Shown here piece by piece: positions 1,533 to 55,539 of a DNA stretch of 64,000 nucleotides (its first letter is position 1; each line of letters begins with the position of its first letter). A program made the position numbers and the translations under genes. The notes below the pieces were generated by a model. The model saw only the letters and a list, made by a program, of their open reading frames with translations, did no database searches and was not told the origin of the DNA. The DNA lies in the IMG/VR virus record IMGVR_UViG_3300027816_000052, positions 62,001 through 126,000 of that record, one strand, 5' to 3'.

Positions 1533-3134
1533 ATGAAAGTTAAAAAAGAAATAATTTTTAGATTTTTGGATTTAAGATTTAGTCGATATACGTTGGTTAA
1601 ATCAAAATGTTCTGTTACTGGTGATTTGAGTTTTATCGTACCAGCTTGGGCAATGTATGCAATTGAATGCGGTAATTACGAGACATTAAGTGAAGAGGAA
1701 ATTGAAAGTCTTAATGATTTTTTGGATGATTTGGTTAAAACTTATGGTAATGCTGTGTTAGCTTTTGGGGATGAATCATATTTTTCAACAATCAATGATA
1801 TTGATAATTTAGGTGGTGACGTTTTTCAGGCTAGTTTAGTTCCAAGTGTAGTAAATACCTATATTGTGGATTTAAATAACGATAAATTAATAATGAAACA
1901 CGAATTTAAAAGTAATTATGTTTTTTTTAAGGATATAATATTTGAAATGAATTCTATTTTTAGTTTAAAAGAAGACGATTACAATTCACTTAGAGAAATT
2001 ATTAATGAGTGGGTTGAGGACAGATTTAATATACCAAGAAGTTTATCGACATTTCATACATTCTCAAAAATAAATTATCGTAACGATTTAATTTCATGTA
2101 TAATGCGTAAGGCAGTTGAGACAAAAAAACTAGATTATCTTAATAATAAAAAAAATAATGTTTCAGAAAATTCAAGTTCTAGATTTGCTGGTGAATATAA
2201 TGGACCGATTGAGTTGGGTTTAAGAAAGTGGAAAAATCCTGAACTTAAACCTTTTAGTGAAATTTCTTCGCATTTAGCAAATAACGATAGTAAAAGCAAA
2301 ACACTTAAAGATAACATAAAACGTATTGTTGGAATGTGGGAAAAAGGTTCAGATGGAACATATGATATACCAACACATGATGTTGATACAATTAATGAGG
2401 ATTTAGCTGTTTGGTTTGGTAAGAAAAAGAAACCAAAAGGTAGTAAACAACCACAAGGTCCGTGGGTTAATATTTGCAAAAAAGATAAAAATGGTAAACA
2501 TCCCCCATGCGGTAGAGGTGAAGCAAAAACATCTGCATATCCAAAATGTCGTGGATATGCTGCTGCTAGAAGAATGTCAGATGAAGCAAAAAGAAAAGCT
2601 TGTTCTCAAAAAAGAAGAGCGGAAAAAAAAGAACCAAAAACTGGAAAAGGAAATAAACCAACAATGGTTTCACATAAAAAGAAAGTTAAAATTAAGGAAT
2701 CCGACCTTTATAATATTATAAAGCGAGTTCTTCTTGAGCAGGAGGAAGAAAAAAGAACTGTTACATTTCCTGCGGGAGCATTTAAATCTTTCATAACATC
2801 ATCAAATGAAAAATTTGTTAAGATTCTTAATAACAAATATGATAGAGTTATTGTTAGTGGAGATTTGGATTTAGATGAGACAGATATTAAGATTTTACCA
2901 AATAATCTTGAAGTTAAGGGTATTCTCTTCTTAAGAGGGTCTTTGATTAAAGAATTACCAGAAAATCTTAAAGTTAATGGACAAATAGATTTAAGAAGTA
3001 CTAATATTAAATCTTTACCGAATAATCTTGTACATGAAAAAGGTTTTATTTGGATATTAGACACACCGTTAAATTACAATGAAGAATTAATAAATCATTA
3101 TGTGGATAAAAATTACGGGTTTTATAGATATTAA
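1533..3134 (+). CDS. multi-domain (polyprotein-like) putative head-associated protein with C-terminal leader + 3 LRR-like repeats
   Basis: ATG 1533 follows the ATATTTAT motif at 1512 (ORF track starts at 1455). Contains a basic Cys domain (EDLAVWFG..PWVNICK..PCGR..YPKCR) and, from ~2680, KKVKIKESDLYNIIKRVLLEQ followed by repeats homologous to 29139 and 54421. Confidence 0.75.
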   Translation: MKVKKEIIFRFLDLRFSRYTLVKSKCSVTGDLSFIVPAWAMYAIECGNYETLSEEEIESLNDFLDDLVKTYGNAVLAFGDESYFSTINDIDNLGGDVFQASLVPSVVNTYIVDLNNDKLIMKHEFKSNYVFFKDIIFEMNSIFSLKEDDYNSLREIINEWVEDRFNIPRSLSTFHTFSKINYRNDLISCIMRKAVETKKLDYLNNKKNNVSENSSSRFAGEYNGPIELGLRKWKNPELKPFSEISSHLANNDSKSKTLKDNIKRIVGMWEKGSDGTYDIPTHDVDTINEDLAVWFGKKKKPKGSKQPQGPWVNICKKDKNGKHPPCGRGEAKTSAYPKCRGYAAARRMSDEAKRKACSQKRRAEKKEPKTGKGNKPTMVSHKKKVKIKESDLYNIIKRVLLEQEEEKRTVTFPAGAFKSFITSSNEKFVKILNNKYDRVIVSGDLDLDETDIKILPNNLEVKGILFLRGSLIKELPENLKVNGQIDLRSTNIKSLPNNLVHEKGFIWILDTPLNYNEELINHYVDKNYGFYRY

Positions 3135-3532
3135 CCCAAAGACTCCAAAATTCTACTTAATGAGTGTTTAATATTTGAATTAATTTCCTTTTCCATTTGA
3201 AGTCTGCGTTTCTCAACTTCATTGTTAAACTCAGAAATAATTTTTTCATAATTTACGCCCTCCATAAAAATAGTATACGAATATACGTGGTTGACAATTT
3301 TTACCGTACCATCATGAATTACAATAAAAATACCGAGAGAATCGTTTTTAATATATCTTTTTTCACTAATTGGTGTTAAAAGGAGTGTAGTATCCTCTTT
3401 ATGAATTAATTTCTCACAGATTTTAAAACATTTAAATTCATGTTGCTGTTTTTTTGTTAAAGCAACATTACCAAATCTTTTAAATTTAATATAATTTTTT
3501 TGAAAAAATCTTTTAATTTTATGTAATAGCAT
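3131..3532 (-). CDS. hypothetical protein (probably early)
   Basis: 133-aa ORF preceded by a Bacteroidota-type promoter. Confidence 0.7.
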   Translation of the reverse strand: MLLHKIKRFFQKNYIKFKRFGNVALTKKQQHEFKCFKICEKLIHKEDTTLLLTPISEKRYIKNDSLGIFIVIHDGTVKIVNHVYSYTIFMEGVNYEKIISEFNNEVEKRRLQMEKEINSNIKHSLSRILESLG

Positions 3533-3552
3533 GTTGGTTAATTAATTTAATG

Positions 3553-3595: not shown

Positions 3596-5119
3596 ATGAA
3601 AAATATTTTAATAAATGATAATCAGTTAAAAAATTTGGTGGAATCAGTTAAACACATTTTAACTGAAGCCGATAAAAGAAATGTTATTATAGACAAAATT
3701 GGTTATTCAAAAGAATGGGCGGATGAGTTCCATAACTTAAGCGATAAATATTCTGTGTGGATTGCTGACTCTTATCTAAAAAAGAAAATGTCTGATAATA
3801 ACCGAACCAAAGAAGAAGTTTTAAAAAAAATAAATGAAAAAGGACCGGATGCAACATACACTTGGTTTAATGGAATTCAAGCAACATATCAATATATTTT
3901 AGATTGGTTAAAGGTACCAAGAAGAGAAGAAATTGATTTACAAAATTTAACATATGATGATGCTTATTTAAAAGCGCGTGAATGGCATGAATCATTAAAG
4001 ACCGGTGAAACAAAAAAATATGAAGAAACGGGCGAAATTATAATTGATTATCGGAATTCAAGAGGGGTTGGTTATTATTGGGTCAATCGAAAAACAAAGT
4101 ATTGTAGCGAAGAACAAAAAAGAATGGGGCATTGTGGTAAAACAGATTTGGGTGATACATTATTTTCATTAAGAAATGTTAATGAATTTGGTGAAGGACA
4201 AAGTTTTATTACAATAGCCTATAAAAATGATGGTACCGTTTATGACTTCAAAGCATCGGGTAATCAAAAACCATCACCAAAATATCATAAATATATTATA
4301 GACATTTTAACTCAGGATAAATATCCAATTAATAATTTATCAAGTGCTGGTCATTCACCAGAAACAAATTTTAAAATTTCTGATTTAAAACCAGAACAAA
4401 TTGAATATGTGTACTCGAAGAATAAAGCATTAAAATATAATATTAATGATAAATCATCGCATCCATATATTGTTAAAGATATTTTAGACGGTAAACTAAA
4501 TTTATCAAATTACTCAAAATCAGACCAAATTGATTTGATTAGAGCATCGAATGAGAATCCAAAATTAATGGAAATATTTAAAAACGAATTATCACATTTC
4601 AATAATTTATTATTGGGTAACACAAATAATATTAAGTTTATTGTTAAAAACTTTTTGGATGTATTTAAAGATTTATTAATTGGTTATATTAATGAAAAAA
4701 ATTATCCGCAGTTTAAACAAGCGTTGATTGTTATTAGTAGACTATTAAATGATTATAGGATAAATTTAATTGAACCATTTTGCGGAATTTTAGGAAAAGG
4801 TTTTACTAAATTTAAAAATAAGGAACTAGATATTATTAGTACCAGTGAAATTAACAGAGCAGTTTTAAGTTGCGCTAAAAAATATAAGTTAACCGATAAG
4901 TATGCTTATATATCTGATTTAAATAGACTTAATCACAGAATTGTAATTCCGGATGGTAAAGATAAAACGTTTGGTGTTATAGATGAGAAAGGAAATATAA
5001 TTATAGGTTTTAATTATGTTAGCTTAAGTCTTAATAAAGATGGTAATTATATTGGTAGAACATTAGGTAATGAAATTGAGGTATTGGACAAGACTGGAAA
5101 TTTAATTATACCGCAATAA
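3596..5119 (+). CDS. PcfJ-like domain protein with head-leader motif and C-terminal WG-like repeat
   Basis: AREWH...EEQKRMGHCG...LFSLR...ITIAY...FKASGNQKP is PcfJ-like; FGVIDEKGNIII is WG-like; likely start MKNILIND (3596) right after ATATTTAT. Confidence 0.55.
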   Translation: MKNILINDNQLKNLVESVKHILTEADKRNVIIDKIGYSKEWADEFHNLSDKYSVWIADSYLKKKMSDNNRTKEEVLKKINEKGPDATYTWFNGIQATYQYILDWLKVPRREEIDLQNLTYDDAYLKAREWHESLKTGETKKYEETGEIIIDYRNSRGVGYYWVNRKTKYCSEEQKRMGHCGKTDLGDTLFSLRNVNEFGEGQSFITIAYKNDGTVYDFKASGNQKPSPKYHKYIIDILTQDKYPINNLSSAGHSPETNFKISDLKPEQIEYVYSKNKALKYNINDKSSHPYIVKDILDGKLNLSNYSKSDQIDLIRASNENPKLMEIFKNELSHFNNLLLGNTNNIKFIVKNFLDVFKDLLIGYINEKNYPQFKQALIVISRLLNDYRINLIEPFCGILGKGFTKFKNKELDIISTSEINRAVLSCAKKYKLTDKYAYISDLNRLNHRIVIPDGKDKTFGVIDEKGNIIIGFNYVSLSLNKDGNYIGRTLGNEIEVLDKTGNLIIPQ

Positions 5120-5537
5120 TATCACCATCTTCTGTTACCATTATACCATCATCATATTTAAACGTTCCGTTATTACCCCTTATGTACCATTGATTTTTTT
5201 CTTGGTAAATACCAACATTTCTACAATTCAAAAATTTATTTAATCTATCTTTTGTTGTCGGTGTCCACCAACCTTTGGTATCTAATTTTATAATATTTGT
5301 GGGGTCTATTTTAATGATATATGTGCTATGGTATCTAATACCAATTTCGTTAATATCTGTTTTACTTAATAAAGTATTGTGACCAATTTTCTTACTTTCT
5401 CTATTACCTAACTCTTCTTTTAATTTATCATAATTTAATGATGTGCATGATAGATTAACTCTTTCTTTTATTAATCGTTTGGTTGAGTTAATCAAAGTTT
5501 CAAGTTGTGATTCTGTTATTATTATATTCTTTTTCAT
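5106..5537 (-). CDS. hypothetical protein with head-leader motif
   Basis: MKKNIIITESQLETLINSTKRLIKE followed by a small domain (YHST.I...LDTKGWWTPTTKDRLN). Confidence 0.7.
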   Translation of the reverse strand: MKKNIIITESQLETLINSTKRLIKERVNLSCTSLNYDKLKEELGNRESKKIGHNTLLSKTDINEIGIRYHSTYIIKIDPTNIIKLDTKGWWTPTTKDRLNKFLNCRNVGIYQEKNQWYIRGNNGTFKYDDGIMVTEDGDIIAV

Positions 5538-5556: not shown

Positions 5557-6417
5557 TTATTTATTTCTCCAACCACCACCTTGTTTTTTATACCATTTTG
5601 CCGCCCAACCACTAGCATAAGCCGAAGGCCAAACTTTATATTTTGATTTTGCTAAAGATTTTGCTTTTGACCATAGTTTTTTATTTGTTGGTTCACGTTT
5701 TGTTTCCTCATCCAATGGTCCAACAACAAATTCATCGTCCTCTTCATTCATCATAAAATCAAAAACTTGATCCAAATTTTCTGTTGCGGTTGTAATGTGG
5801 TCATCCGCCCAATCATGTCCATTTTGAAGTATGTCTTCAATCATTTGCGGTTCTAATGATAATAGTTTATCAATCTGTCTTCGCATTTGCTTCAAGTTGC
5901 TAAAAAACATGTAATTACCTGTTTTTTGCTCTTGGATTTTTGCATTTATTAATTCTATTAACTGCGATTCTGTTAATTTAATTGTTTTTTTCATTGTTAT
6001 ATTTCTATTTTCTTTTATTCCATCTCTTTTCTTTATTAAATCCGAAACTTTACCATGTGGGGGAAATTCAATAAACTTAAATAATTCTAATGCCCAACTT
6101 TCAACATAAGGTACAATTTCTTTTCTCTCAACACCCATAGCTGATGTGATATTATCTACTAACATACTTCGCATTGAGACCGAAGTTCTATCATGTTGTG
6201 TAGGTTCAAAACCTATTTCACTAAATTTTTGTTTTTCATTATAAAAAACTATTTCATTTTTAGCGTCACGTAATTCTTCTTCGGTATAGGATGGGTCAGC
6301 AAAAAGTTCAGGACCATAAGCTATTATCATAGCATTATAATATGTCATAACTAAACATTTAGATAATATAGCATCTAAATAAACATAAACCCCCCTCTTT
6401 ATTTTTTCCGGATTCAT
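5557..6417 (-). CDS. multi-domain hypothetical protein with internal leader motif and C-terminal basic WPSAYASG domain
   Basis: Internal MKKTIKLTESQLIELINAKIQEQ (ATG at 5994); C-terminus PTNKKLWSKAK..AK.KYKVWPSAYASGW...YK..GGGW. Confidence 0.7.
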   Translation of the reverse strand: MNPEKIKRGVYVYLDAILSKCLVMTYYNAMIIAYGPELFADPSYTEEELRDAKNEIVFYNEKQKFSEIGFEPTQHDRTSVSMRSMLVDNITSAMGVERKEIVPYVESWALELFKFIEFPPHGKVSDLIKKRDGIKENRNITMKKTIKLTESQLIELINAKIQEQKTGNYMFFSNLKQMRRQIDKLLSLEPQMIEDILQNGHDWADDHITTATENLDQVFDFMMNEEDDEFVVGPLDEETKREPTNKKLWSKAKSLAKSKYKVWPSAYASGWAAKWYKKQGGGWRNK

Positions 6418-8003
6418 TATTTCTTATTAACAATTTGAAATTTAATGGCTCTCTTATAAGTATCCTTTTCTCCACTAGTATTCACTTTTAAGTCAACAAA
6501 ATATTCATTCGGGAGCTTATCTCTCATATCAAAAATAAAATAATATTCATTTGGTGTTCTATTAACTAATGTCCAATCTTGAACCTGAACTTCGGTTTGA
6601 CCCTCTCTCACATAAACTCTATAATAAACCTCAACATCGGTTAAAAGTTGTTGTGTTGTATATGCTTTTTTAACAATAACACCAATTTTTCTAACATCAG
6701 TATTTAATATTTTTTCATCCTGTTTAATTCCATAAAAATCAAATCCTAAAATCGCGGGTTCTTTTGATTCAGTACCAATGTTAAAATAACTACCATAAGG
6801 TTTTATGATTAAATCATTTTCAACATTTGGTAATGGAATTCCATTGATTGCAATATTGCTCCAAACATCGGTATATTGACAAGGTGTTGTAATTCCTGTT
6901 ATAGAGGGAATCGTTACCTCATATATACCTTTTGTTATTAAGCACGTTGTTAACCCCATATAACCAGATATCGGGTCTCCATTGGTATCTAAAATTGATA
7001 CAACTGGATTGTTATCAAAATTTACATAATCACCATTAACATATGCGTAAAGATAAAGTTTGTTTTGTCTGTACTGAACAAAATTATTTCTATCATCTTG
7101 TATTAAATCATCATAAACCGTCTCAAGATATGGTTCATAAAATGTTTGTGTGTGTCTGGTAAAGAATCCAACGGAATAATTTTCAGATAAGCCGGTTAAA
7201 TTCTCAAGTTCAGGTTTAAATGCAATTCCCCAACCTGTAACACCCGTTAATGAACCATTTATAATTGAATTTATTTCATTTGTCATATCAAATTCAATAT
7301 CCTCATTTCCAAATTCAAAATGTTGGATATTGACAATGGTAATTGCGCTATAATTAATATTTCCGTTATTCTCATTGTTATATATTCCCGGTTCAGACCA
7401 ATAATCTAAAGTTGTTCTTTTTAACCAATTTGAGGGTCTCTGAGAGTATGACTTGTCTTCTGGTTCATAAAGTGGAACAGAAGCTCCCTGAGTCGAATTT
7501 AATGAGGTTGAGAAGTTATTATAATCATAACCAACACCTTCATCCCATAAAGCCAGTCCTTGGTCATAAATGCAAGTTGTTATTGCGGTTGGGTTTGGTA
7601 TAATTGGGTCGCAAGGGTCAATTGGTGTTGGTATTGGATTTCCGCTAATTGTACATGCTGCAATTTGGGGAATTCTAAATAAAATTAAATCAAAAGATGT
7701 TGCTCTTCTTCTACCGGAAGAATCTAATATATTTAATAGTTCTTTGTCAAAAGCGGATGTATTTGTCATACGTAACGTGTGGGTCATCGCTGTTGTACAC
7801 CCAGTTGAAATTGTTGTTCCAGTTATCTTATCAATTAATGGTTCTAAGTCCAAATCAAAGATAAATCTTGTATAACCTTTTGGAGCGATAGAATTGGGGT
7901 TTGTACCAAAATACAACTCAGTTACCGGATTTTGTCCGGTGTTTGTGCAATTATTGTAAATAATGGTATTATTTCTGCTAAAATATGACCTGTGTATTGA
8001 CAT
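6417..8003 (-). CDS. putative virion structural (baseplate-region) protein
   Basis: 528 aa, beta-rich composition, preceded by ATATTTAT, near the gp5-like gene. Confidence 0.5.
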   Translation of the reverse strand: MSIHRSYFSRNNTIIYNNCTNTGQNPVTELYFGTNPNSIAPKGYTRFIFDLDLEPLIDKITGTTISTGCTTAMTHTLRMTNTSAFDKELLNILDSSGRRRATSFDLILFRIPQIAACTISGNPIPTPIDPCDPIIPNPTAITTCIYDQGLALWDEGVGYDYNNFSTSLNSTQGASVPLYEPEDKSYSQRPSNWLKRTTLDYWSEPGIYNNENNGNINYSAITIVNIQHFEFGNEDIEFDMTNEINSIINGSLTGVTGWGIAFKPELENLTGLSENYSVGFFTRHTQTFYEPYLETVYDDLIQDDRNNFVQYRQNKLYLYAYVNGDYVNFDNNPVVSILDTNGDPISGYMGLTTCLITKGIYEVTIPSITGITTPCQYTDVWSNIAINGIPLPNVENDLIIKPYGSYFNIGTESKEPAILGFDFYGIKQDEKILNTDVRKIGVIVKKAYTTQQLLTDVEVYYRVYVREGQTEVQVQDWTLVNRTPNEYYFIFDMRDKLPNEYFVDLKVNTSGEKDTYKRAIKFQIVNKK

Positions 8004-8092
8004 TCAAATCTGTTTTCTAATAAATATTGGGTTTTTAATTAAAATTGATTTGTTTCAAGATATTTATATAATACCAAACCAACAACAACCAA

Positions 8093-8510: not shown

Positions 8511-10076
8511 TTAGTTAATTCTCACATTTTGATTTAAAATATTATCCGCAGCGTTTCTTATTTTATTTAGAATGTCTTGTGACTGTATTCCAGTTGTGCT
8601 AACAGGAACCGGAGGTAATCCCGGAAATGGATGTACGTGGGTTGTTAAAAACTGAACGATTAAATTTAATAAATCCATTAATTCCTCACCCCTTACCATT
8701 GAATTTGTCTTTGGTAATATTTCTGAATTCATTAGTTCTTGGGAAATTCCATATACCGTTCCATCAATATTTATCTTTCCTTTACTTGGTATTGTGGAAT
8801 TATGTGATAATAAGACCAATTTATCTCCACCCATAATACCGACAGTTTGAGTTAATGGACTTACCGATTTTTCAACATATTCCTCATTTGTAAATTGCAA
8901 TGGTTTACCAAAACTATTTTTTGTATATAATACACCTGTACCAAATATTTTATCAGATGGTTGTAATTTTACATTAGAATAAATATAACTAACATTATTA
9001 AATTGAACCGAATATTGAATTGGGTCTTCGGTTGATATCCATTTATATGTTATTTTATTTGGTCTAAATGCTAACGGAAATACATTTGGTAATGTTATAG
9101 TTACACCTTGTGTTGTTGTAATTCTACCCTCATTATTTAATTTCTTTATTGTATCATTAATGAATTGAGTTGTTAATTCTTTTGTTAAAGAATTAAATTG
9201 AACTGAAGTAACTAGTGTTATATCGCTAGGATTTAATTGCGTATCAACAGTAAACTCAACATTTTTTAGATATTCTATATTATCTTTTAATTGATATAAA
9301 TCAATTGTTCCGGTAAAATTATTAGGTATTGTATTGTTTTCCGGATTAATAATTGACCATTCCAATAAGAATTTAACTTGTGGTGAACCAGTTGTTATTT
9401 TTGTAAGCTTTCTCGTACCAACACTGTTTTCAGTTGTTCTATATGCGGAAAGTTGTAAGAATGATCTTTTATCGTAATATCTAGGAAGTTGATTGATTTT
9501 TTGTGGAATGTTTCTACCTGCTCTTAAAATAACATCATCATCTTTGACGATAATATCACAAGTTCCTCTACCAATAATTGCGTTGTCTCTTGGTTCAGGA
9601 TAAACACCTTTACTGAAATTATTATAATATTCATCAGTTCCCGGTTTTTTAATGTCGGGTAATGGTTTAACTTGCGTACCCTGTGAGGTGTATTTTCTGG
9701 AACTTAAATAACTTTCAAAACTTGATGCAACAGGTGAAGAAAATCCTCCCTGAACGTAATATTTATTTTGATATGGAAATTCTTTATCAGCATAAAAAAT
9801 ATTTACAGATTCCTGAGTTTCAGGTTGTTGATTTATAAAAAATGGTAATAGTGGTAAACATAAAAACGGATCTCTAGTAGTCCACTTATATAATTCTGGA
9901 ATATCTTCTTCAGTATCTTTTGTTGTTTTCTTTAATTCTAAAGCATCGCTCCATACAGCTTGAACAATTTGTACTTTATTGTCTAATTGTGAGACAGCAC
10001 GAATTCTTCCCAATAACAAAGGATCTTTATTATCAATGACAATTGCGGGAAAAATTATTTGATTTTTATTTTTCAT
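8511..10076 (-). CDS. baseplate hub/spike protein (gp5-like N-terminal OB fold)
   Basis: N-terminal VIDNKDPLLLGRIRAV; C-terminal HVHP motif typical of spike tips. Confidence 0.65.
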   Translation of the reverse strand: MKNKNQIIFPAIVIDNKDPLLLGRIRAVSQLDNKVQIVQAVWSDALELKKTTKDTEEDIPELYKWTTRDPFLCLPLLPFFINQQPETQESVNIFYADKEFPYQNKYYVQGGFSSPVASSFESYLSSRKYTSQGTQVKPLPDIKKPGTDEYYNNFSKGVYPEPRDNAIIGRGTCDIIVKDDDVILRAGRNIPQKINQLPRYYDKRSFLQLSAYRTTENSVGTRKLTKITTGSPQVKFLLEWSIINPENNTIPNNFTGTIDLYQLKDNIEYLKNVEFTVDTQLNPSDITLVTSVQFNSLTKELTTQFINDTIKKLNNEGRITTTQGVTITLPNVFPLAFRPNKITYKWISTEDPIQYSVQFNNVSYIYSNVKLQPSDKIFGTGVLYTKNSFGKPLQFTNEEYVEKSVSPLTQTVGIMGGDKLVLLSHNSTIPSKGKINIDGTVYGISQELMNSEILPKTNSMVRGEELMDLLNLIVQFLTTHVHPFPGLPPVPVSTTGIQSQDILNKIRNAADNILNQNVRIN

Positions 10077-12578: not shown

Positions 12579-13310
12579 TTAGTCTAACATATTTTTTAAA
12601 GTACCATTATATAGTATTTTAAACTTCTTTATTGAAATTCGTATTTCTTTTGTTGATAAATTTGTTAGTTCTCTTAGTGTTAATAAAATTAAATTTTTAT
12701 TAAATTTATTATTTCTTGTTTCATAAAATAAAGATTGATAATTTGAAAATAACTCTATTAGACCATATGCTAATTTTTTTTCATTCTCATTTAGATTTGA
12801 ATTTTCCGCAAAATTGATTAAATCAGATAAATATGTTTTAACAATATCTTCTTCATCAATTTCATAATTCTCTATTAAATAAGACATTTCATAATTATTC
12901 TCTAGACTACTACATACATCTTCATAAGAAATTTTTTTATTTTTTTCTTTCTGATCTTTAATGATTTGACCCATTAAATAATTTTTACAAATTGTGCCAA
13001 AATAAGAATATGCTTTCTTTTCTCTTGACGGTTTGAATTTATCAACTTTAGTCATTAAAAAAGAATGTGTGTCTGTATGAATTTCTTTAAAATCCATATC
13101 TTTTCTATATAACTTATATCTTCTTATGATAGAAGATATCATTTTGTCAAGAGGGTGTCTTAAATACTCGTTGTATATCTTATTCTTTTCTTCAATTGTT
13201 GTTGCGGATAAGAACACTCTAACCGCGTGTTCTTGTTCCTCACCAAAATAATTTTCTTTTTCTATTTGTTCACCTCCTGTTTTAGTAACCTTTTTTGGTT
13301 TTACAGGCAT
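12579..13310 (-). CDS. late-transcription sigma factor, T4 gp55-like
   Basis: NYFG...KFKPSREKKAYSYFGTICKNYL...IIKD resembles sigma region 2 of the gp55 family (NFDP.K..NPFAYFTQI). Confidence 0.7.
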   Translation of the reverse strand: MPVKPKKVTKTGGEQIEKENYFGEEQEHAVRVFLSATTIEEKNKIYNEYLRHPLDKMISSIIRRYKLYRKDMDFKEIHTDTHSFLMTKVDKFKPSREKKAYSYFGTICKNYLMGQIIKDQKEKNKKISYEDVCSSLENNYEMSYLIENYEIDEEDIVKTYLSDLINFAENSNLNENEKKLAYGLIELFSNYQSLFYETRNNKFNKNLILLTLRELTNLSTKEIRISIKKFKILYNGTLKNMLD

Positions 13311-14116
13311 TAAACTTCTTGTTGTTCATATTTTATGCTTCTATCTTTTGTGAAGAAATATTCTTTTTTAGCAATATTCACCCAGAATTTAACCTCGTCT
13401 TCAGTAAGGACATTTTCACCATTCTTATAATTCCAAAAAATAGAACCTTCTCTTAAATTAATGTGTTTATAACCAACTCTAGGTATAGTCATTATTTTTG
13501 CTGAGTTATATGTCATTCTTAACAAGAACTCATAAACGAAGGTTAATTTCATTGATGCTTTGAACATTCCAAATTCCATTACTTTGTCACGTTTAATAAC
13601 CATTCCAGATGTTTGGAAATTTTGATAATTTTGTAATGTTTCATTTGTTAAAATACCCATTTCCATTGCAAAGTTCGCAGCAAATGTTGCTTCATTCGTG
13701 AAACCCGCAAAAGTACCCTTCGAGTCAACATCAACAACAATTGGAAGAAATGCTTGAACATCTGGATAGATTTCAGCATATTTCTTAACATTTTTAAACC
13801 AAATGCTAGAGTATTCATCATCAAATTCAAAAAATGAAACCCATTCAGATGATGACGATTCAATACCTAAGTTAACTTGGGATGCAAAGTTTGGAGTTTC
13901 GTTATATTCAACAAGTTTAACATTTAACTCACCAAAATCAGTTTCTTTTAGTTTACCAACTAACTGTTCCTCAGTTGTATGTACGATAATTAATTCGTTA
14001 ATACCAACTTGTTGTGTCTGTAATGATTTAATTGCTTTTTCAAAATATTCATTAAAATCTTTTACCAAAGCTGATTTAATTGGTAAAATGACGGATACGT
14101 TTAATTTGTTTTCCAT
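13310..14116 (-). CDS. glycosyltransferase, GT2-like
   Basis: VSVILPI...AIKSL...N.G......WVSFFEFDD (GT-A fold pattern). Confidence 0.7.
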   Translation of the reverse strand: MENKLNVSVILPIKSALVKDFNEYFEKAIKSLQTQQVGINELIIVHTTEEQLVGKLKETDFGELNVKLVEYNETPNFASQVNLGIESSSSEWVSFFEFDDEYSSIWFKNVKKYAEIYPDVQAFLPIVVDVDSKGTFAGFTNEATFAANFAMEMGILTNETLQNYQNFQTSGMVIKRDKVMEFGMFKASMKLTFVYEFLLRMTYNSAKIMTIPRVGYKHINLREGSIFWNYKNGENVLTEDEVKFWVNIAKKEYFFTKDRSIKYEQQEV

Positions 14117-14117
14117 G

Positions 14118-15185
14118 TTATGCTTCGACTGTTTCGTTAAGTTTATTTAATTGTGAGACAAATGATTCCTTTCTTGAATTTAAATAAGAATCAAAAAGTT
14201 CAATTACTTTATTATCAAACTTTTCAGCATCTGAGAATTGTGCTGCGGTTTTTTCAATTTCATCAAATAGTTCTGGTTTAATATTATCTTCAATCCAGTT
14301 TTGAACAAAATCAGCGGTAATATCAGCTAACTGTGTTGGGTTTTCCAACCAAATACCATTTTCTTCTTTCATCCAAGAAGGAACCAAATTTGGGACTTGT
14401 CCAATAACCGGAACACCAACCTTCATTGACTCCAATGGGAATGTACCAAAAGCACTTGTTGGGTCAATCCAAACGGAAAGGAAGCAATCTTTCAATCCAT
14501 TTGCGAATTCTTTTTCAGTTAAACCTCTTAAATCTCTAAATGTGACCCATCTAAACTGGGGATATTTTAAGTAGAATGTTTTAATGAAATTTAAACCATC
14601 TCTTTGCTCTCTAGCATGTACAGCAACAATCGGTTTTGCGGGAAGAGTTGCTTTTTCAAAAGTGTCGGGAATATATGGTTCCAAAATATCAATTGAAGCG
14701 GTTTTCATTATTTTTGAAATGAAATCCTTTTGAGTTTCAGAAGTTGTAATACACTTAACAAAACCATATTGCATCCAAGTTGCACCCGGTTGTAGTGTTT
14801 CCATCATATGGTCATATGCTTGACAAAGAACAATTTTACCGCAAGGTAAGTTTTTAACTTGGTCCATAACGAAAGCAAATATTTCCGGAATTACAAGATA
14901 ATCTTCGGGTGAAATTTCTAAGCTAGTACCCTCAATAGATTTGTGTGGAAGTTCCTTCATATAATCATCACCCAACCAATTTGCAACACCAACATAATCG
15001 GGTTTTTCATGAAGAATTATTGCATTATAACCCGCTCTTTTTAAGGTTAACGCCATTTGATAAATATATCTAATGGAACCTTTAGCATTTCCTTTAGTAT
15101 CTTGAACAAAGAAATAAATTTTAGAATTTTTTTGTTCTATATTTGAAATAGAATTTTTTAATTTTTCAACAACACTATTATCCAT
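14118..15185 (-). CDS. glycosyltransferase, GT-B/GT4-like
   Basis: LVIPEI...; SAFGTFPLESMKVGVPVIG motif. Confidence 0.7.
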   Translation of the reverse strand: MDNSVVEKLKNSISNIEQKNSKIYFFVQDTKGNAKGSIRYIYQMALTLKRAGYNAIILHEKPDYVGVANWLGDDYMKELPHKSIEGTSLEISPEDYLVIPEIFAFVMDQVKNLPCGKIVLCQAYDHMMETLQPGATWMQYGFVKCITTSETQKDFISKIMKTASIDILEPYIPDTFEKATLPAKPIVAVHAREQRDGLNFIKTFYLKYPQFRWVTFRDLRGLTEKEFANGLKDCFLSVWIDPTSAFGTFPLESMKVGVPVIGQVPNLVPSWMKEENGIWLENPTQLADITADFVQNWIEDNIKPELFDEIEKTAAQFSDAEKFDNKVIELFDSYLNSRKESFVSQLNKLNETVEA

Positions 15186-15186
15186 A

Positions 15187-15447
15187 TTAAATTTTGTTAA
15201 GTATTTTATGTTTTATTAATGTATTAAAAGCTAGCTTAAAGGGAATAGAAATTGATTGTCCTTTTAAACCTAATGTTTCATCAATTTGTTCTTCATTAGA
15301 AAGAATGACTTCAATCATCGCTTTAATAACTTCAAATTTAACCGCGCTTATACTGAGTTCAGTTCCACCAGATACGCTTGGTAATGCGACATATTCATCA
15401 AATTGGTCTATGTCAATGTAATATGCGTCTCCAAAAAGTTTAATCAT
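15187..15447 (-). CDS. hypothetical protein
   Basis: 86-aa ORF within the operon. Confidence 0.65.
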   Translation of the reverse strand: MIKLFGDAYYIDIDQFDEYVALPSVSGGTELSISAVKFEVIKAMIEVILSNEEQIDETLGLKGQSISIPFKLAFNTLIKHKILNKI

Positions 15448-16108
15448 TTTTTAATGTTTTAATAATTCCTTCCAATTCCTTAATTTTATTTATTTCGTAT
15501 TTTGAAGGAATATGTTTATTATATTCTTGATTGAATTTTATAACTGTTTTGTTGGATGGGTGATTTACGAGTAAGTCAGGGTTAGCTGTGATTAGAACAT
15601 CAATTTCATCCCACATTGAATTGATTGTGGAATTACTGTAAAATCTTATGGTCTCAATTAAGCAACCAAACTTGGACAAAAAGAATAATGAAGCTGGTTT
15701 TGATTTACCGATTTCATCTGAAACAATAACCAAATCATGTTCATCTCGCAAATTTCGATAAATATCATTTAAATCATTAAATGAGAAGTATTCAATAGAG
15801 GGCGCATGACCAAATATTTGCATGGGAAATTCTTCGTACATAAATGAGTATAATTCATCATCATTTCTAAATGCGAAATGTTCTTTAAGATTTAAAGACG
15901 TTATTGGTCTTTTTATTTCATAGGTAAAGTTATCTTCAGCACTTACTTCGGTAAATGTTGCTTCATCAGTATCTAAACTGGACTCACCTTCATGTTGTTT
16001 TAATGGTTGTTCTTCAACATCTTGCTCAAGATAGGTTTTTTCATAGATTTGAACAATCTTACCAAGAGTATCTCTTAAAACACCATTTAATTCAATACCA
16101 ATTCTCAT
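15440..16108 (-). CDS. 5'(3')-deoxyribonucleotidase-like HAD-fold protein with degenerate motif I
   Basis: RIGIELNGVLRD (vs DxDGV), DVLITANP (vs DxLIDD), YNKH at the C-terminus. Confidence 0.55.
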   Translation of the reverse strand: MRIGIELNGVLRDTLGKIVQIYEKTYLEQDVEEQPLKQHEGESSLDTDEATFTEVSAEDNFTYEIKRPITSLNLKEHFAFRNDDELYSFMYEEFPMQIFGHAPSIEYFSFNDLNDIYRNLRDEHDLVIVSDEIGKSKPASLFFLSKFGCLIETIRFYSNSTINSMWDEIDVLITANPDLLVNHPSNKTVIKFNQEYNKHIPSKYEINKIKELEGIIKTLKND

Positions 16109-16241
16109 TAATACTTTTTATGAAAAATTAAAAAGTAATTTTAATAACTAAATAGTTATTATTTGTAAAACGATATTTTTCTATTTATATCTAAAATATA
16201 ATTTTTATTTTATATTAAAAATAAACATATAATTTATAATT

Positions 16242-16535: not shown

Positions 16536-16552
16536 TAAAAAAGTTTAAAAAC

Positions 16553-16590
16553 AAAAAATAAATCCCATAAATTGTGGGATTTATTTTTTT
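16553..16590. terminator. bidirectional intrinsic terminator
   Basis: aaaaaataaatcccat-aaatt-gtgggatttattttttt between convergent genes. Confidence 0.75.
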
Positions 16591-16608
16591 AGAAAAACGA
16601 AGCAAAAA

Positions 16609-18429: not shown

Positions 18430-18516
18430 TAAATTTTTTGATTTTTTTAATTATTATTTATATATAAATATAAATCAAAACTAAAGTAATAAAAATTATT
18501 ACTAATGTTTTTTTAT

Positions 18517-29023: not shown

Positions 29024-29138
29024 CTTTATCTATAAGATATAGTAATAATTTATTGTTTTTATAAATTATAATCAAAATTTTTGATTAGTTCAAGTTTTTT
29101 ATAATTTATTTTTTTAAACCAATAGAATATTTATAATT

Positions 29139-29900
29139 ATGAAAAAGATAAAATTAACAGAATCAGATTTATATAGAATTGTTAGAAAGGTTCTTCTTGA
29201 GCAAGAGGAAGAAAAGAGAAGTTTTACATTTTCTCCGGGAACATTTGCGTCTTTTATAACATCATCATCAGGTGAAAGATTTGTTAAACATCTTAATAAC
29301 AAATATGATGAGGTTATTATTAATGGTGATTTGGATTTAGATGGAACACCAATTCAATCCTTACCTGATAATCTTCATGTTGGTGGGGATTTGAATTTAT
29401 ATGGAACACCAATTCAATCCTTACCGGATAATCTTTATGTTGGGAGAAATTTGGATTTAAGAGGAACACCAATTCAATCCTTACCGGATAATCTTTATGT
29501 TGGGAGAAATTTGGATTTACAAGGAACACCAATTCAATACTTACCGGATAATCTTCATGTTGGGGGAAGTTTGTGGTTAAATGGAACACCAATTCAATAC
29601 TTACCGGATAATCTTCATGTTGAGGGAAGTTTGGATTTAAGAGGAACACCAATTCAATCCTTACCGGATAATCTTTATGTTGGGGGATATTTGAATTTAC
29701 ATGAAACACAAATTCAATCCTTACCGGATAATCTTTATGTTGGGGGATATTTGAATTTACATGAAACACAAATTCAATCCTTACCGGATAATCTTTATGT
29801 TGGGGGGACAATTTATATTAATGGAATACCTTTAAATGATAATGATAAGTTGGTTGCAAAATATAAAGAAAAATATAGAATTGATAGAGCACTTATTTAA
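29139..29900 (+). CDS. LRR-like repeat protein (8 x 20 aa) with head-leader motif
   Basis: Leader MKKIKLTESDLYRIVRKVLLEQ; repeats LxVGGxLxLxGTPIQSLPDN. Confidence 0.85.
   Translation: MKKIKLTESDLYRIVRKVLLEQEEEKRSFTFSPGTFASFITSSSGERFVKHLNNKYDEVIINGDLDLDGTPIQSLPDNLHVGGDLNLYGTPIQSLPDNLYVGRNLDLRGTPIQSLPDNLYVGRNLDLQGTPIQYLPDNLHVGGSLWLNGTPIQYLPDNLHVEGSLDLRGTPIQSLPDNLYVGGYLNLHETQIQSLPDNLYVGGYLNLHETQIQSLPDNLYVGGTIYINGIPLNDNDKLVAKYKEKYRIDRALI
29320..29810 (+). repeat. 60-nt tandem repeat array, 8 units
   Basis: Successive 60-nt lines align in register (ggaacaccaattcaatccttaccggataatctt...). Confidence 0.95.
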
Positions 29901-42662: not shown

Positions 42663-43931
42663 ATGGCTAATAAAAAAATTAGTAACTTACCTGAGTATAA
42701 CACACCACAACCAAATGATGTGTTACCAATTGTTAATGTTGCTAATAGCGTAACACAAAAAGTACTATTTTCAGCAATTAGTCAAACAATAACATCAGGA
42801 TTAGTTGATGTTTTTGTGACTGGTGGTACTTATTCAGCTGGAACAGCAACATTTATAAATAATACTGGCGGAACGTTTAGTGTTAGTGGCTTTACCGATA
42901 GTCAAGCAGGTTCCTCAGGAACATCAGGGACAAGTGGCTCATCTGGCTCTAGCGGAACATCAGGGATAAGCGGCTCTTCAGGAAGTTCTGGAACATCTGG
43001 TACAAGTGGTTCATCAGGAAGTTCTGGTACAAGTGGTTCATCTGGTAGTTCAGGAACATCTGGAACAAGTGGTTCATCAGGAAGTTCTGGTACAAGTGGT
43101 TCGTCAGGTTCTTCAGGAACAAGTGGTTCATCTGGTAGTTCAGGAACATCTGGAACAAGTGGTTCATCAGGAAGTTCTGGTACAAGTGGTTCGTCAGGAA
43201 GTTCTGGTACAAGTGGTTCGTCAGGTTCTTCAGGAACAAGTGGTTCATCAGGAAGTTCTGGTTCTTCAGGTACAAGTGGAATAAATGGTTCTTCTGGAAC
43301 ATCAGGAACAAGTGGTTCATCTGGTAGTTCAGGAACATCTGGAACAAGTGGTTCATCAGGAAGTTCTGGTACAAGTGGTTCATCAGGAAATTCTGGTTCT
43401 TCAGGAACAAGTGGTTCATCTGGTAGTTCAGGAACATCAGGAACAAGTGGTTCATCAGGAAGTTCTGGCACAAGTGGTTCGTCAGGTTCTTCAGGAACAA
43501 GTGGTTCATCTGGTAGTTCAGGAACATCTGGAACAAGTGGTTCATCAGGAAGTTCTGGTACAAGTGGTTCGTCAGGTTCTTCTGGTACAAGTGGTTCATC
43601 AGGAAGTTCTGGTTCTTCAGGTACAAGTGGAATAAATGGTTCTTCTGGAACATCTGGTACAAGTGGTTCTTCAGGAAGTTCTGGTACAAGTGGTTCATCA
43701 GGTTCTAGCGGAACATCTGGCACAAGTGGTTCTTCAGGAAGTTCAAGTGTTACTAATTTTCCGGTAACTTTTAATAATTCTGGAAGTGGAAATGCATCTG
43801 GGGTTAATTTTGATGGTTCTGTTGCACGAACTGTTAGTTTTAATACAATAGGTGCAAATAAAGTAATAACCTCTGGTACCGCTGCTCCGACCGGAGGTAA
43901 TGATGGAGACATCTATTTACAATTTACATAA
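42663..43931 (+). CDS. fibre protein with a long Gly-Ser-Ser/Gly-Thr-Ser repeat
   Basis: MANKKISNLP N-terminus; ~280 aa of G-X-X repeats; C-terminus SGTAAPTGGNDGDIYLQ. Confidence 0.75.
   Translation: MANKKISNLPEYNTPQPNDVLPIVNVANSVTQKVLFSAISQTITSGLVDVFVTGGTYSAGTATFINNTGGTFSVSGFTDSQAGSSGTSGTSGSSGSSGTSGISGSSGSSGTSGTSGSSGSSGTSGSSGSSGTSGTSGSSGSSGTSGSSGSSGTSGSSGSSGTSGTSGSSGSSGTSGSSGSSGTSGSSGSSGTSGSSGSSGSSGTSGINGSSGTSGTSGSSGSSGTSGTSGSSGSSGTSGSSGNSGSSGTSGSSGSSGTSGTSGSSGSSGTSGSSGSSGTSGSSGSSGTSGTSGSSGSSGTSGSSGSSGTSGSSGSSGSSGTSGINGSSGTSGTSGSSGSSGTSGSSGSSGTSGTSGSSGSSSVTNFPVTFNNSGSGNASGVNFDGSVARTVSFNTIGANKVITSGTAAPTGGNDGDIYLQFT
42908..43746 (+). repeat. 9-nt (GSS/GTS) tandem repeat with higher-order duplication
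   Basis: ggt tca tca / gga aca agt units; the rare GIN unit recurs 351 nt apart (43271, 43622). Confidence 0.9.
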
Positions 43932-51009: not shown

Positions 51010-52545
51010 TTAATCTAAAATAAATAATAAGTCCTTATCTTTAAAGATACAAACGCCCTCATCAATTATTGTGTTAGCGTTTGAAAATACATATGTTTTT
51101 TTGTTTTTTTCAAAAATTAACCAATCGGTTTTGTATTTTTTTATTGAAGATGACGGTACTATTTTAATGGTATTATTTTCGGTTACAATTTCTTTAGCTG
51201 GTTTTATTTGCGCATTTGCCACCAATCCATTAAGCTTAACTTGCACATCAATTCCTCCGCGCATATCATCACTATTACCGTAACCAGAAATTTTTGCAAC
51301 ATTGTTTTCACCAAATCGTTTAATTAAAGCATCCACCACTAAATTTTCAATCGAATCCCCCTTTTTTGTTGTCTCTGAAAGAGCGGTAATTAATTTTTTA
51401 AATGTTTTGGACTCCTTACTAAAAATTCTATACTTAAATAAATCAATATGTTCCATTAAAGTGGAAATCTGTTTTTTTAATTCTTCCTTATTTTGAGAAT
51501 TATTAAGGAAATCAATAGAATCTTTACCATTGATTTCTAAGACTTTATTAATGTCTTCAGTCAAAATCTTTAATCCTAAAATGTTTGTGTTTAATTTATT
51601 AAGGACAGACCATCCCTTTTTCTCAACATCATAAACACCGTGTATATCATTTATTATTCTAAAATTTTCATTAAAAACTTCAGAGAGAACATTACCAATG
51701 AAAACTTTATAACCTTCAAATAATTCCTTATTTTTTTTATAAACTTCTAAGTAACTTCCGAAGTTTTCTCTACCATAAGATTCTTCTAATATTTCAGAAC
51801 TATTATTCATACTCTCTTTAATATTTTCATTTTGTTGATTTTCTAGTCGTTCATTAATATATTCCCAATTAACGACTCTCCAGAAATTTTCAATATACTT
51901 ATCTTTCTGGTTTCTATAAGTAAGATAGTAAGCATGTTCCCATAAATCAAGTCCTAATAGGGGAAAACCGCCATTATCAACAATACCCATCAACGGGTTG
52001 TCTTGATTAGGTGTGTTCATTATTTTTAATGTACCTCTTTTTGTTAAAACCAACCAAACCCATCCGGAACCAAAACGTTCTTTTGCGGAAGCTTCAAATT
52101 TTTTTCTAAATTCTTTTATTCCACCAAAATTTTTTTGAATTATTTTAAGAATTGGACCGCTAGCTTCTTGTTGTTTTGGAGATAACATCTTCCAAAAAAT
52201 TGCATGATTATATGCTCCACCGGCATTATTTCTAATATCGGTGTTATATTGACTAATTGTTTTGACAATATGTTCTAAATCATCCTCTTTTTTTCCGCTT
52301 TTTGTTAAAGCATCATTTAATTTATTAACATAACCAATATAATGTTTGTTATAATGGTAACTCATAGTTTCCGGGTCAATAAATTTTTTTAGCGAGTCAA
52401 ACTTATACGGTAACTTTTCAATTGGAATTTTACCTTTTACGTTTTTAACCTTTTTTTCTTCTCGAAGGTAACCCTTTTTCATTTCTACTCTGTAGATTTC
52501 TTCCTCCAATCTGTCAATTCTATTAATTAAATTTTTCATGACCAA
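51010..52545 (-). CDS. Mn/Fe superoxide dismutase fused to a PD-(D/E)XK nuclease-like domain
   Basis: LPY..L...ID.ETM.YHY.KH..YV, NAGG.YNH..FW, FGSGWVWL, NQD, DLWEHAYY; C-terminus G...E...DDMRGGIDV.......QIKP. Confidence 0.85.
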   Translation of the reverse strand: MVMKNLINRIDRLEEEIYRVEMKKGYLREEKKVKNVKGKIPIEKLPYKFDSLKKFIDPETMSYHYNKHYIGYVNKLNDALTKSGKKEDDLEHIVKTISQYNTDIRNNAGGAYNHAIFWKMLSPKQQEASGPILKIIQKNFGGIKEFRKKFEASAKERFGSGWVWLVLTKRGTLKIMNTPNQDNPLMGIVDNGGFPLLGLDLWEHAYYLTYRNQKDKYIENFWRVVNWEYINERLENQQNENIKESMNNSSEILEESYGRENFGSYLEVYKKNKELFEGYKVFIGNVLSEVFNENFRIINDIHGVYDVEKKGWSVLNKLNTNILGLKILTEDINKVLEINGKDSIDFLNNSQNKEELKKQISTLMEHIDLFKYRIFSKESKTFKKLITALSETTKKGDSIENLVVDALIKRFGENNVAKISGYGNSDDMRGGIDVQVKLNGLVANAQIKPAKEIVTENNTIKIVPSSSIKKYKTDWLIFEKNKKTYVFSNANTIIDEGVCIFKDKDLLFILD

Positions 52546-54371: not shown

Positions 54372-54420
54372 TTAAAAATAATTAATCAATATTTTTTAAA
54401 TCAATAGAATATTTATAATT

Positions 54421-55539
54421 ATGAAAAAGATAAAATTAACAGAATCAGATTTATATAGGATAATTAAACAAGTTCTTTTTGAACAGGAGGAAGAAAAGAG
54501 AAGTTTTACATTTTCTCCGGGAGCATTTGCATCTTTTATAACATCATCATCAGGTGAAAGATTTGTTAAACATCTTAATAACAAATATGATGAGATTGTT
54601 GTTAATGGGGGTTTGGATTTACAAGGAACACCAATTCAATCCTTACCGGATAATCTTAAAGTTGGGGGATGGTTGGATTTACGAGGAACACCAATTCAAT
54701 CCTTACCGGATAATCTTCATGTTGGGGGAAATTTGGAGTTAGATGAAACACAAATTCAATCCTTACCGGATAATCTTTATGTTGGGGGAAATTTGGAGTT
54801 AGATGGAATACCAATTCAATACTTAGGGAATAATATTCATGTTAAGGGAAATTTGGAGTTAGATGGAATACCAATTCAATACTTAGGGAATAATATTCAT
54901 GTTGGGGGAAATTTGTATTTATATGGAACACAAATTCAATCCTTAGGGGATAATCTTCATGTTGGGGGAAATTTGGATTTATATGGAACACCAATTCAAT
55001 CCTTACCGGATAATCTTCGTGTTGGGGGATGGTTGGATTTAAAAAGAGCACCAATTCAATCCTTACCGGATAATCTTCATGTTGGGGGAGATTTGTTTTT
55101 AAGTAAAACACCAATTCAATCCTTACCGAATAATCTTCATGTTGGGGGAAGTTTGTATTTACAAGGAACACCAATTCAATCCTTACCGGATAATCTTTAT
55201 GTTGGGAGAAATTTGGATTTAAGAGGAACACCAATTCAATCCTTACCGGATAATCTTCGTGTTGGGGGAGATTTGTGGTTAAATGGAACACCAATTAAAT
55301 CCTTAGGGGATAATCTTTATGTTGGGGGAAGTTTGTGGTTAAATGGAACACCAATTCAATACTTACCGGATAATCTTCATGTTGAGGGAAGTTTGGATTT
55401 AAGAGGAACACCAATTCAATCCTTACCGGATAATCTTCATGTTCCAAAAATTATTTTAATTAAAACCACGCCATTAAGTGATAATTATGAATTGGTTCAG
55501 ACATATAGTGAAAAATATAAAATTAATAGTACTTTTTAA
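54421..55539 (+). CDS. LRR-like repeat protein (14 x 20 aa) with head-leader motif
   Basis: Near-identical leader/N-cap to 29139; repeats LxVGGxLxLxGTPIQSLPDN. Confidence 0.85.
   Translation: MKKIKLTESDLYRIIKQVLFEQEEEKRSFTFSPGAFASFITSSSGERFVKHLNNKYDEIVVNGGLDLQGTPIQSLPDNLKVGGWLDLRGTPIQSLPDNLHVGGNLELDETQIQSLPDNLYVGGNLELDGIPIQYLGNNIHVKGNLELDGIPIQYLGNNIHVGGNLYLYGTQIQSLGDNLHVGGNLDLYGTPIQSLPDNLRVGGWLDLKRAPIQSLPDNLHVGGDLFLSKTPIQSLPNNLHVGGSLYLQGTPIQSLPDNLYVGRNLDLRGTPIQSLPDNLRVGGDLWLNGTPIKSLGDNLYVGGSLWLNGTPIQYLPDNLHVEGSLDLRGTPIQSLPDNLHVPKIILIKTTPLSDNYELVQTYSEKYKINSTF
54601..55440 (+). repeat. 60-nt tandem repeat array, 14 units
   Basis: Lines 54601-55381 align in register. Confidence 0.95.

Follow-up and report, generated by a model that had tools for sequence, protein, structure and literature searches.

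Several unrelated proteins encoded in a 64,000-nucleotide stretch of IMG/VR virus record IMGVR_UViG_3300027816_000052 (roughly positions 62001–126000 of the 256,029-bp record; the whole stretch is referred to as “the window”) share a peptide of about 22 residues with the consensus M-K-K-(I/V)-(I/V)-(K/R)-L-T-E-S-D-L-x-(R/N)-(I/L)-(V/I)-(K/R)-(R/K)-V-(I/L)-x-E-Q, designated here as the tag. The tag is a real, previously uncatalogued, phage-restricted and portable peptide. The source is a T4-like jumbo phage of freshwater Bacteroidota that is uncultured, and hundreds of its relatives have the tag as well. As for its function, the chances appear about even that the tag is a long and highly conserved analogue, removable by protease, of the capsid-targeting sequence (CTS) of phage T4.

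Distribution of the tag

A degenerate DNA pattern for the tag matched at least 120 IMG/VR stretches, where about one match or fewer is expected by chance (estimated from the information content). In almost all of these matches, a Met is located 4–6 residues ahead of K-L-T-E-S and the sequences diverge directly after E-Q. A profile of the tag alone was searched against 1.84 billion cluster representatives and recovered 862 clusters (50% identity) at E ≤ 1e-3, in which the tag nearly always falls within residues 2–35 (consensus, MKKVIRLTESDLVRLVKRVINEQ). The fetched loci (1.01 Mb, every locus with a G+C content of 27–38%) contained 173 copies with a median of 8 open codons upstream. A Met is present just upstream in 167 of the 173, which are N-terminal, and a minority of the copies are internal or C-terminal. 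As is the case for terminal propeptides, the tag is borne by unrelated proteins of one phage, and its cargos fall into 113 groups. A first-pass annotation of the window had described the peptide as a portable leader on unrelated cargos, and its portability was borne out well beyond the window by these numbers of stretches, clusters, and cargo groups.

Tag-only queries returned nothing relevant from Pfam or PHROGs at E ≤ 10, no NCBIfam model covers the tag, and a full-text literature search with motif strings gave no relevant paper. A word-indexed search with the tag region alone returned near-identical proteins only, and a search of the ESM Atlas with the tag gave single-helix noise only. The 596 Gb of cellular genomes contained two pattern matches, both of which are genuine N-terminal tags in contigs of Bacteroidota metagenome-assembled genomes; at least the 164-kb contig (31% G+C) is probably mis-binned phage DNA. 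The contigs surrounding two divergent tag-bearing proteins are phage-like. Homologues of the cargos in cyanophages and in the huge phage LR756502 are devoid of the tag. Whatever its function, a 22-residue module that occurs in at least 862 clusters and is missing from Pfam, PHROGs, and NCBIfam merits a family definition.

Tag copies in the window

A hidden Markov model (HMM) was built from 217 leaders (IMG/VR loci and library proteins, window excluded) and run on the six-frame translation of the window, a check that had been suggested in the first-pass annotation. Six copies scored above the best of 30 shuffled windows (13.0 bits), and the next match in the window reached 4.8 bits. The copies follow a fixed register of L0-T1-E2-S3-(D/Q)4-L5 ... 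(I/L)8-(V/I)9 ... V12-(I/L)13-x-E15-Q16. They are listed below together with a degenerate seventh copy (LRR, leucine-rich repeat; ↓, predicted cleavage junction).

29139..29204 (+): canonical tag MKKIKLTESDLYRIVRKVLLEQ, N-terminal in gene 29139–29900 (LRR-like repeats); match at 29139, 48.3 bits
54421..54486 (+): canonical tag MKKIKLTESDLYRIIKQVLFEQ, N-terminal in gene 54421–55539 (LRR-like paralogue); match at 54421, 48.3 bits
2676..2747 (+): internal tag KKKVKIKESDLYNIIKRVLLEQEE within gene 1533–3134; match at 2676, 38.5 bits
25716..25796 (+): tag MRTKNKKPTRITEKQLVAILKKVINEQ on a 94-aa acidic protein, gene 25716–26000; match at 25731, 30.6 bits
5926..5994 (−): tag MKKTIKLTESQLIELINAKIQEQ on the “YMFFSNL”/DUF5872-like family gene 5557–5994; match at 5991, 27.5 bits
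5463..5537 (−): long-variant tag MKKNIIITESQLETLINSTKRLIKE, with three extra residues, on the Kyano_Gp96-domain protein gene 5106–5537; match at 5534, 14.8 bits
3596..3667 (+): long-variant tag in degenerate form, MKNILINDNQLKNLVESVKHILTE↓ADKR, on a protein of 507 aa, gene 3596–5119; no HMM score

Ten sites had been cited in the first-pass annotation. Six of them (2679, 5537, 5994, 25716, 29139, and 54421) are supported by HMM scores of 15–48 bits, and the scan of the window gave no support for 26002, 31289, and 52545; a homologue search with 26002 returned identical copies only. The remaining site, 3596, stands as a decayed copy in spite of its lack of an HMM score, because its 67%-identical orthologue L127 carries a long variant of the 5537 type. 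L127 starts with MVKKDIVITESQLNHLVNSVKVILTE↓ADKR and reads ITESQL...VILTE↓A, with the same +3 spacing as in the 5537 copy. The match of the 5537 copy is limited to the first half of the tag because of its three extra residues. In the 5537 protein, PF23790 (Kyano_Gp96) spans residues 54–131, and the cyanophage homologues align from approximately residue 38 onward and thus do not have the tag.

The 2679, 29139, and 54421 proteins, all with the tag and LRR-like repeats, are paralogous to one another, which leaves four independent cargo types in the window, plus 3596. The 54421 gene is a paralogue of 29139 in which the upstream region is duplicated as well. Many metagenomic homologues of the 29139 protein share the tag, while generic LRR proteins are without it. 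At least five tag-plus-LRR paralogues are present in the same genome (window 29139–29900, 54421–55539, and 2664–3134, and loci L025 and L080). The DNA of these genes is repetitive with a 60-nt periodicity and has many staggered self-matches of 83–88%, and short-read assemblies break there.

Gene 1533–3134 consists, in this order, of an extra N-terminal part, the head-module “g237” family, the tag, and the LRR region. The 5994 gene has a 141-codon in-frame upstream extension (to 6417) in the window genome, and 25 orthologues have the Met of the tag as the protein start. In genes 5557–6417 (−) and 1533–3134 (+), the tag is fused in frame behind upstream coding sequence, and most relatives start at the Met of the tag; protein P0158, from another cluster, has the same upstream in-frame fusion. 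It is possible that these upstream-fused genes use internal initiation or polyprotein processing.

Candidate cleavage sites and exchangeable propeptides

In T4, gp21 cleaves after L/I-X-E, and the CTSs are propeptides of 10–20 residues that are taken off after they have bound to the prohead core (PMC9026906, PMC5694885). T4 Alt and gp21 also shed C-terminal pieces (PMC9026906). The tag is flanked by two (L/I)-x-E motifs, a near-invariant L/I-T-E at its start and an (I/L)-x-E at its end. The latter is present at +13 to +15 in 199–213 of the 217 copies, a set that is biased by the search pattern. As a control for this bias, the HMM was truncated before the tail, and 46 further copies were found; E is at +15 in 36 of the 46, and I, L, V, or M is at +13 in 39. 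The conservation of the tag ends directly after E-Q.

Other head proteins of the lineage have predicted sites of the same type. The propeptide of the major capsid protein (MCP) is conserved and ends with ...ENQAS(Y/H/F)LINE↓A(S/T), just ahead of a VVFPI(V/I)RRVF block. This block presumably corresponds to the start of mature T4 gp23*. The N-terminus of the lineage gp21 is MKQLRILE↓A, and that of g237 is MK(R/K)N(R/K)ISE↓ATGSG. Members of the 3596 family have HILTE↓ADKR, VILTE↓ADKR, or, in the more distant orthologue L128, MKLLDNLTSIILE↓ASKK at the same junction, and the alternatives in the g237 family are MKRNRISE↓ATGSG and MLSEIIKKVLRE↓ASGDSGG. In both families, orthologues thus have either the tag or, in its place, a short (L/I)xE↓A propeptide.

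Selection on the peptide and predicted helix

The conserved positions of the tag use all synonymous codons (Leu and Ser with six each, those of Ser including AGY, Thr with four, and Arg with AGA, CGA, and CGT), and this free variation indicates that selection acts on the peptide and not on the DNA or RNA. It contradicts an explanation of the tag as a nucleic-acid signal, either an initiation element for ribosomes with phage bS21 or a recombination sequence at cassette boundaries. Relatives of the phage do encode bS21 within the head module, and many independent promoter-led cassettes have the tag at their 5′ end, as would be expected of such a signal. The occurrence of internal and C-terminal copies, the helical periodicity, and the invariance at the amino acid level across the 862 clusters all speak against it, and hardly any weight can be given to this explanation.

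In an AlphaFold2 (AF2) model of the 5994 family (25-sequence alignment), the tag forms a separate helix (residues 9–23) that is followed by a 10-residue coil (residues 24–33). The model was used for secondary structure only because of its low confidence (predicted local distance difference test score, pLDDT, of 62.8).

Lineage and head module

The G+C content of the window is approximately 29%, and no near DNA match to it was found among the GenBank phages. It encodes a family-B DNA polymerase, a helicase, collagen-like tail fibres, many glycosyltransferases, and a tail sheath that is approximately 30% identical to the cyanophage and T4 gp18 proteins. Locus L063 overlaps window positions 7011–1 and continues 2.8 kb leftward into a gp23-type major capsid gene, indicating that the head module begins just beyond the left edge of the window. 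Related loci encode Portal_T4, Peptidase_S77 (T4 gp21), an acidic scaffold, and Gp23, and the family scores in tag-bearing related loci are 7.5e-23 (PF03420), 2.3e-71 (PF07068), and 4.2e-67 (PF07230). The gp21-type protease and gp22-type scaffold are thus represented in related tag-bearing loci, and gp23 in the genome of the window itself. In locus L101, a gene for ribosomal protein S21 (9629–9820, +; PF01165, 34.2 bits) is flanked by those of the portal and the protease and runs on the opposite strand. Freshwater jumbo phages that encode bS21 have been predicted to infect Bacteroidetes (bioRxiv 10.1101/2021.10.11.463225). The bS21 gene inside the head module ties the tag-bearing lineage to these published phages and places it with, or beside, them.

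Many loci show synteny of the tagged YMFFSNL and g237 families with gp23 and gp21, and in many of them the YMFFSNL family is 3–4 kb from gp23. The g237 family, which is encoded just downstream of gp23, ends in a tag-like helix in some genomes and runs into other cargo elsewhere. Two conserved, basic, Cys-containing motifs were observed in proteins of the head module (window 2300–2660, in gene 1533–3134; window 5560–5700, −; and L101 2064–2777). One reads DLAVWFGKKKKPKGS.QP.GPWVNIC.K...G.HPPCGR...YPKC, and the other, which is DUF5872-like, K.KF.VYPSAYANGYAVQVCKG..G.DGKK.CS..YC.

Promoter-like motif upstream of tagged genes

Most of the tagged genes had been said in the first-pass annotation to follow a late motif. 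The motif is real and is enriched upstream of tagged genes, although it is ATATTTAT, or (A)TATTTAT, in the sense orientation and not the T4 late promoter TATAAATA. It was found at the following sites in the window.

29128..29134 (+): (A)TATTTAT, 4 nt ahead of the ATG of 29139
54410–54416 (+): (A)TATTTAT, ahead of 54421
25688–25694 (+): (A)TATTTAT, ahead of 25716, with ATATTTAT 19 nt upstream of the gene
1513–1519 (+): (A)TATTTAT, ahead of ATG 1533, the likely true start of gene 1533–3134, with ATATTTAT 13 nt upstream
57332–57338 (+): (A)TATTTAT, ahead of the tail sheath
8020..8026 (−): (A)TATTTAT, ahead of gene 6417–8003

Behind gene 6417–8003 are the close-packed genes 5557–6417 and 5106–5537 on the same strand, both of which are tagged; the shared strand and the tight spacing suggest that the three are co-transcribed. 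In the window, the motif also precedes a collagen-like fibre gene and an adaptor-like gene, and it was not found ahead of the DNA polymerase, helicase, or glycosyltransferase genes. In related loci (L101, L036, L061, and L094) the genes for the scaffold, gp21, g237, and g138 have it 0–25 nt ahead of the ATG. Overall, 64 of 126 tagged genes have a TATTTAT in the 50 nt upstream as compared with 271 of 970 other genes (Fisher p = 5e-7), and it is often just behind a terminator-like hairpin.

The T4 late promoter TATAAATA itself occurs 19 times in the window, which is approximately the chance level, and showed no enrichment ahead of tagged genes (6.3% vs 5.2%). Its occurrences at 29139, 54421, and 25716 are only the reverse complement of the sense motif ATATTTAT. 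Genes of the lineage have A-rich leaders without a Shine-Dalgarno sequence, as is expected for Bacteroidota hosts. A gene at 51010–52545 (−) has the structural-type promoter motif upstream and bears no tag; it encodes an Fe/Mn superoxide dismutase (PF00081 and PF02777, residues 43–233) with a C-terminal extension of about 280 residues.

Cargo proteins

The 270 cargos of at least 40 aa were sorted into the 113 groups by BLASTP, and 89 of the groups are singletons. Pfam matches were obtained for four groups only, namely PG_binding_1 (the largest group, 47 of the 270), LysM, Kyano_Gp96, and Annexin, and PHROGs added endolysin-type peptidoglycan-binding matches only. No recognisable replication enzyme was detected in the Pfam and PHROGs scan of the 113 groups. 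Judged by their recognised domains, the cargos are small and non-enzymatic, and most are 40–150 aa long. Those in the window include the LRR proteins, the Kyano_Gp96 protein (PF23790), and the DUF5872-like family. Among the labels given to the cargos in the first pass, LRR holds; PcfJ and WYL domains were not found in the window, and the superoxide dismutase and the membrane protein are untagged.

The recognisable cargos are binding modules (PG_binding_1, LysM, LRR, and Annexin), which would also suit an uncleaved structural anchor. According to this alternative, the helix docks diverse domains (LRR, peptidoglycan-binding, LysM, annexin-like, and small unassigned ones) on an external structure of the virion, such as capsid decoration sites, head fibres, whiskers, or the baseplate, in the manner of receptor-binding proteins, in which the N-terminal anchor is conserved and the C-terminal part varies. 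Several copies per protein would provide avidity or cross-linking, and the tagged genes bear the promoter motif of structural genes. However, a single helix of 17–22 residues is far below the size of the known anchor domains of receptor-binding proteins, and most cargos, at 40–150 aa, have no recognisable binding fold. The invariant E in two (L/I)xE contexts and the swap with short (L/I)xE↓A propeptides would also be left unexplained. We consider such an anchor unlikely.

Comparison with known targeting peptides

The T4 CTS was reportedly described by Mullaney and Black in 1996 for IPI, IPII, and IPIII, which are internal proteins, and for Alt (reviewed in PMC9026906 and PMC5694885). The tag resembles it as a short, terminal, propeptide-like element on unrelated small proteins of a T4-type phage that ends in the gp21 motif (L/I)-x-E, in a genome with a gp21/gp22/gp23 head module. 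The cargo genes are variable and scattered in both cases, and C-terminal propeptides are also known in T4 (Alt and gp21). In contrast, the T4 sequences MKTYQEFIAE↓A and MKTFKEF...STITE↓A share no sequence similarity with the tag, which is longer (22–27 residues vs 10–19), far more conserved, and attached to more than 100 cargo families as compared with a handful in T4. Also unlike the T4 CTS, the tag has two (L/I)xE motifs with usually a Q after the last E and occurs also internally, at the C-terminus, and in 2–3 copies.

The phiKZ-like and SPN3US giant phages have long N-terminal propeptides on ejection and inner-body proteins (PMC5694885, PMC7411985). They are likewise jumbo phages with many head-internal proteins that are processed after Glu by a gp21-related protease, and their propeptides are thought to target the prohead and are chopped small at internal sites. 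Those propeptides differ from the tag in that they are often longer than 100 residues, have no single shared portable sequence, and use another cleavage motif, and their processing is known from proteomics.

The encapsulation peptides of bacterial microcompartments (BMCs) are helices of approximately 18–20 residues, N-terminal or sometimes C-terminal, that are joined by a linker to diverse cargo (PMC4594438, PMC7221423, PMC12339742). They are portable to foreign proteins, as the tag is across cargos. The tag agrees with this format, as it is a helix followed by a coil in the low-confidence AF2 model (pLDDT 62.8) and has copies at both termini. The peptides of PduP and EutE presumably have a similar pattern of (D/E)-L-x-x-(I/V)-(I/V)-(K/R)-x-(I/V)-(L/I). 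Unlike the phage-restricted and near-invariant tag, BMC peptides are host-encoded, weakly conserved, and uncleaved, and bind BMC shell tiles. No BMC shell genes (PF00936 and PF03319) were present among the annotated proteins, where no systematic scan was made.

The same format raises the alternative that the tag serves as a helix for docking or condensation in a non-virion assembly of the infected cell, where it would collect many proteins of the phage on a single phage or host hub (a factory, condensate, chaperone, or host target). Short helices with a linker on diverse cargo, N-terminal or more rarely C-terminal, are used in this way by encapsulation peptides (PMC7221423, PMC12339742); the AF2 helix (9–23) with its 10-residue coil agrees with such a role, and the multi-copy proteins resemble multivalent scaffolds. 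No shell or hub gene was identified, though no search aimed at one was made. Moreover, the tag is essentially limited to phage contigs, with the two matches in 596 Gb of cellular genomes, and the synteny with the head module, the structural promoter class, and the two flanking (L/I)xE motifs all favour the prohead. A non-virion role thus seems distinctly improbable. Encapsulin cargo-loading peptides are also short and direct diverse cargo into an HK97-fold shell. They are C-terminal and extended, attach directly to the shell protein, and are retained; the tag is similar in being a short peptide that would steer diverse cargo, and differs in being predicted to be helical and mostly N-terminal.

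Proposed function of the tag

In a capsid-targeting role of the T4 type, the tag would be made late as a predicted helical docking peptide of approximately 22 residues, would bind to the prohead core through one of its conserved components, either the acidic scaffold of the gp22 type or the gp21-type protease, and would thereby carry the fused cargo into the assembling head. The prohead protease would then cut the tag at the flanking (L/I)-x-E sites (L-T-E at the start and (I/L)-x-E at the end), and the freed cargo would remain in the capsid and exit with the DNA at the next infection. We infer core binding, cleavage, packaging, and ejection. All the circumstantial features that a T4-style capsid-targeting propeptide requires are present, and the capsid-targeting function proposed in the first-pass annotation agrees with the protease, propeptide, synteny, and promoter context. 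It agrees less well with the absence of similarity to the T4 CTS, the additional internal and C-terminal copies, and the peptidoglycan-binding cargo.

A number of observations weigh against capsid targeting or lend it no support. Two or three tag copies are present in 39 of the 141 top representative matches (28%), which is unexpected for a simple N-terminal leader; internal copies are mostly without a Met, and the tag is located at the extreme C-terminus in P0132, P0157, and P0171. The T4 proteins ipI, ipII, and ipIII (NC_000866) did not match the tag HMM even at E ≤ 1000, so the tag would be an analogue, not a homologue, of the T4 CTS. In the canonical tag, the terminal E is followed by Q and not by the A of the other predicted sites of the lineage and of the T4 norm. 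The hydrophobic moment of the helix (0.16–0.48) is not above that of shuffles. A likeness between the tag and the N-terminal helix of the scaffold (…EEINQLVKESLSEQ-acidic), which is kept among scaffolds, was noted by eye and is not significant (1.2 bits). Peptidoglycan-binding domains are the commonest cargo and, with LysM and LRR, are binding modules for which a role at the surface or in the periplasm would be at least as fitting. The motif ATATTTAT can be called “late” solely on the basis of the genes that it precedes. Metatranscriptome contigs cover the 54421 gene and the sheath, with the depth over the LRR gene inflated by paralogous repeats, and the DNA control was likewise low over the helicase chosen as the early-gene reference. 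Finally, tblastn searches with the 30-aa tag, a two-tag protein, and two window proteins found no carrier of the tag among 50,697 GenBank phages, and hence no cultured phage.

The internal, C-terminal, and multiple copies would need an added assumption under capsid targeting. One possibility is that L-T-E frees the cargo upstream of the tag and I-x-E the cargo downstream. Alternatively, proteins with several tags might each be cleaved into more than one cargo, by analogy with the fragments of T4 gp22, gp67, and gp68.

If the tag is a capsid-targeting sequence, small hypothetical proteins of abundant lake phages become candidate injected effectors (anti-defence, host-takeover, or envelope-binding), the T4 rule of a propeptide plus (L/I)xE extends to a distant Bacteroidota-infecting branch, and a compact handle becomes available for loading foreign proteins into capsids. 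It would also be, to our knowledge, the most conserved and most widely used signal of this kind. We further propose, more tentatively, that one near-invariant 22-residue tag may mark the whole set of head-packaged, injected proteins in a large clade of uncultured freshwater Bacteroidota jumbo phages (those that encode bS21, together with their relatives). This set would span hundreds of families, including LRR, peptidoglycan-binding, Cys-rich, and multi-tag “polyprotein” cargos, and the phage “injectome” would be readable straight from sequence. The two bracketing protease sites would allow excision from either end of the cargo and would make the tag a ready handle for protein delivery.

Other features of the window

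A Mom-family protein (115–1023, +; PF25680, 7.8e-20) is encoded between the capsid gene and the tagged genes, and its N-terminus is HNH-like by eye (HIDHIIP). The gene of a PhoH-like ATPase (16609–18429, −) is apparently split by an intein or a homing-endonuclease segment, with PF02562 matching mainly at residues 429–605 and LAGLIDADG_3 and Hom_end at residues 281–339; the N-terminal part has matches to terminase-like ATPases in PHROGs. Two long runs of glycosyltransferase-, methyltransferase-, and acetyltransferase-like genes (13310–25627, −, and 35060–41740, +), which include multidomain proteins of 910 and 911 aa, suggest extensive glycan synthesis or modification by the phage. The collagen-like tail-fibre gene at 42663–43931 (+) consists of G-x-y repeats, which give rise to long spurious open reading frames on both strands.

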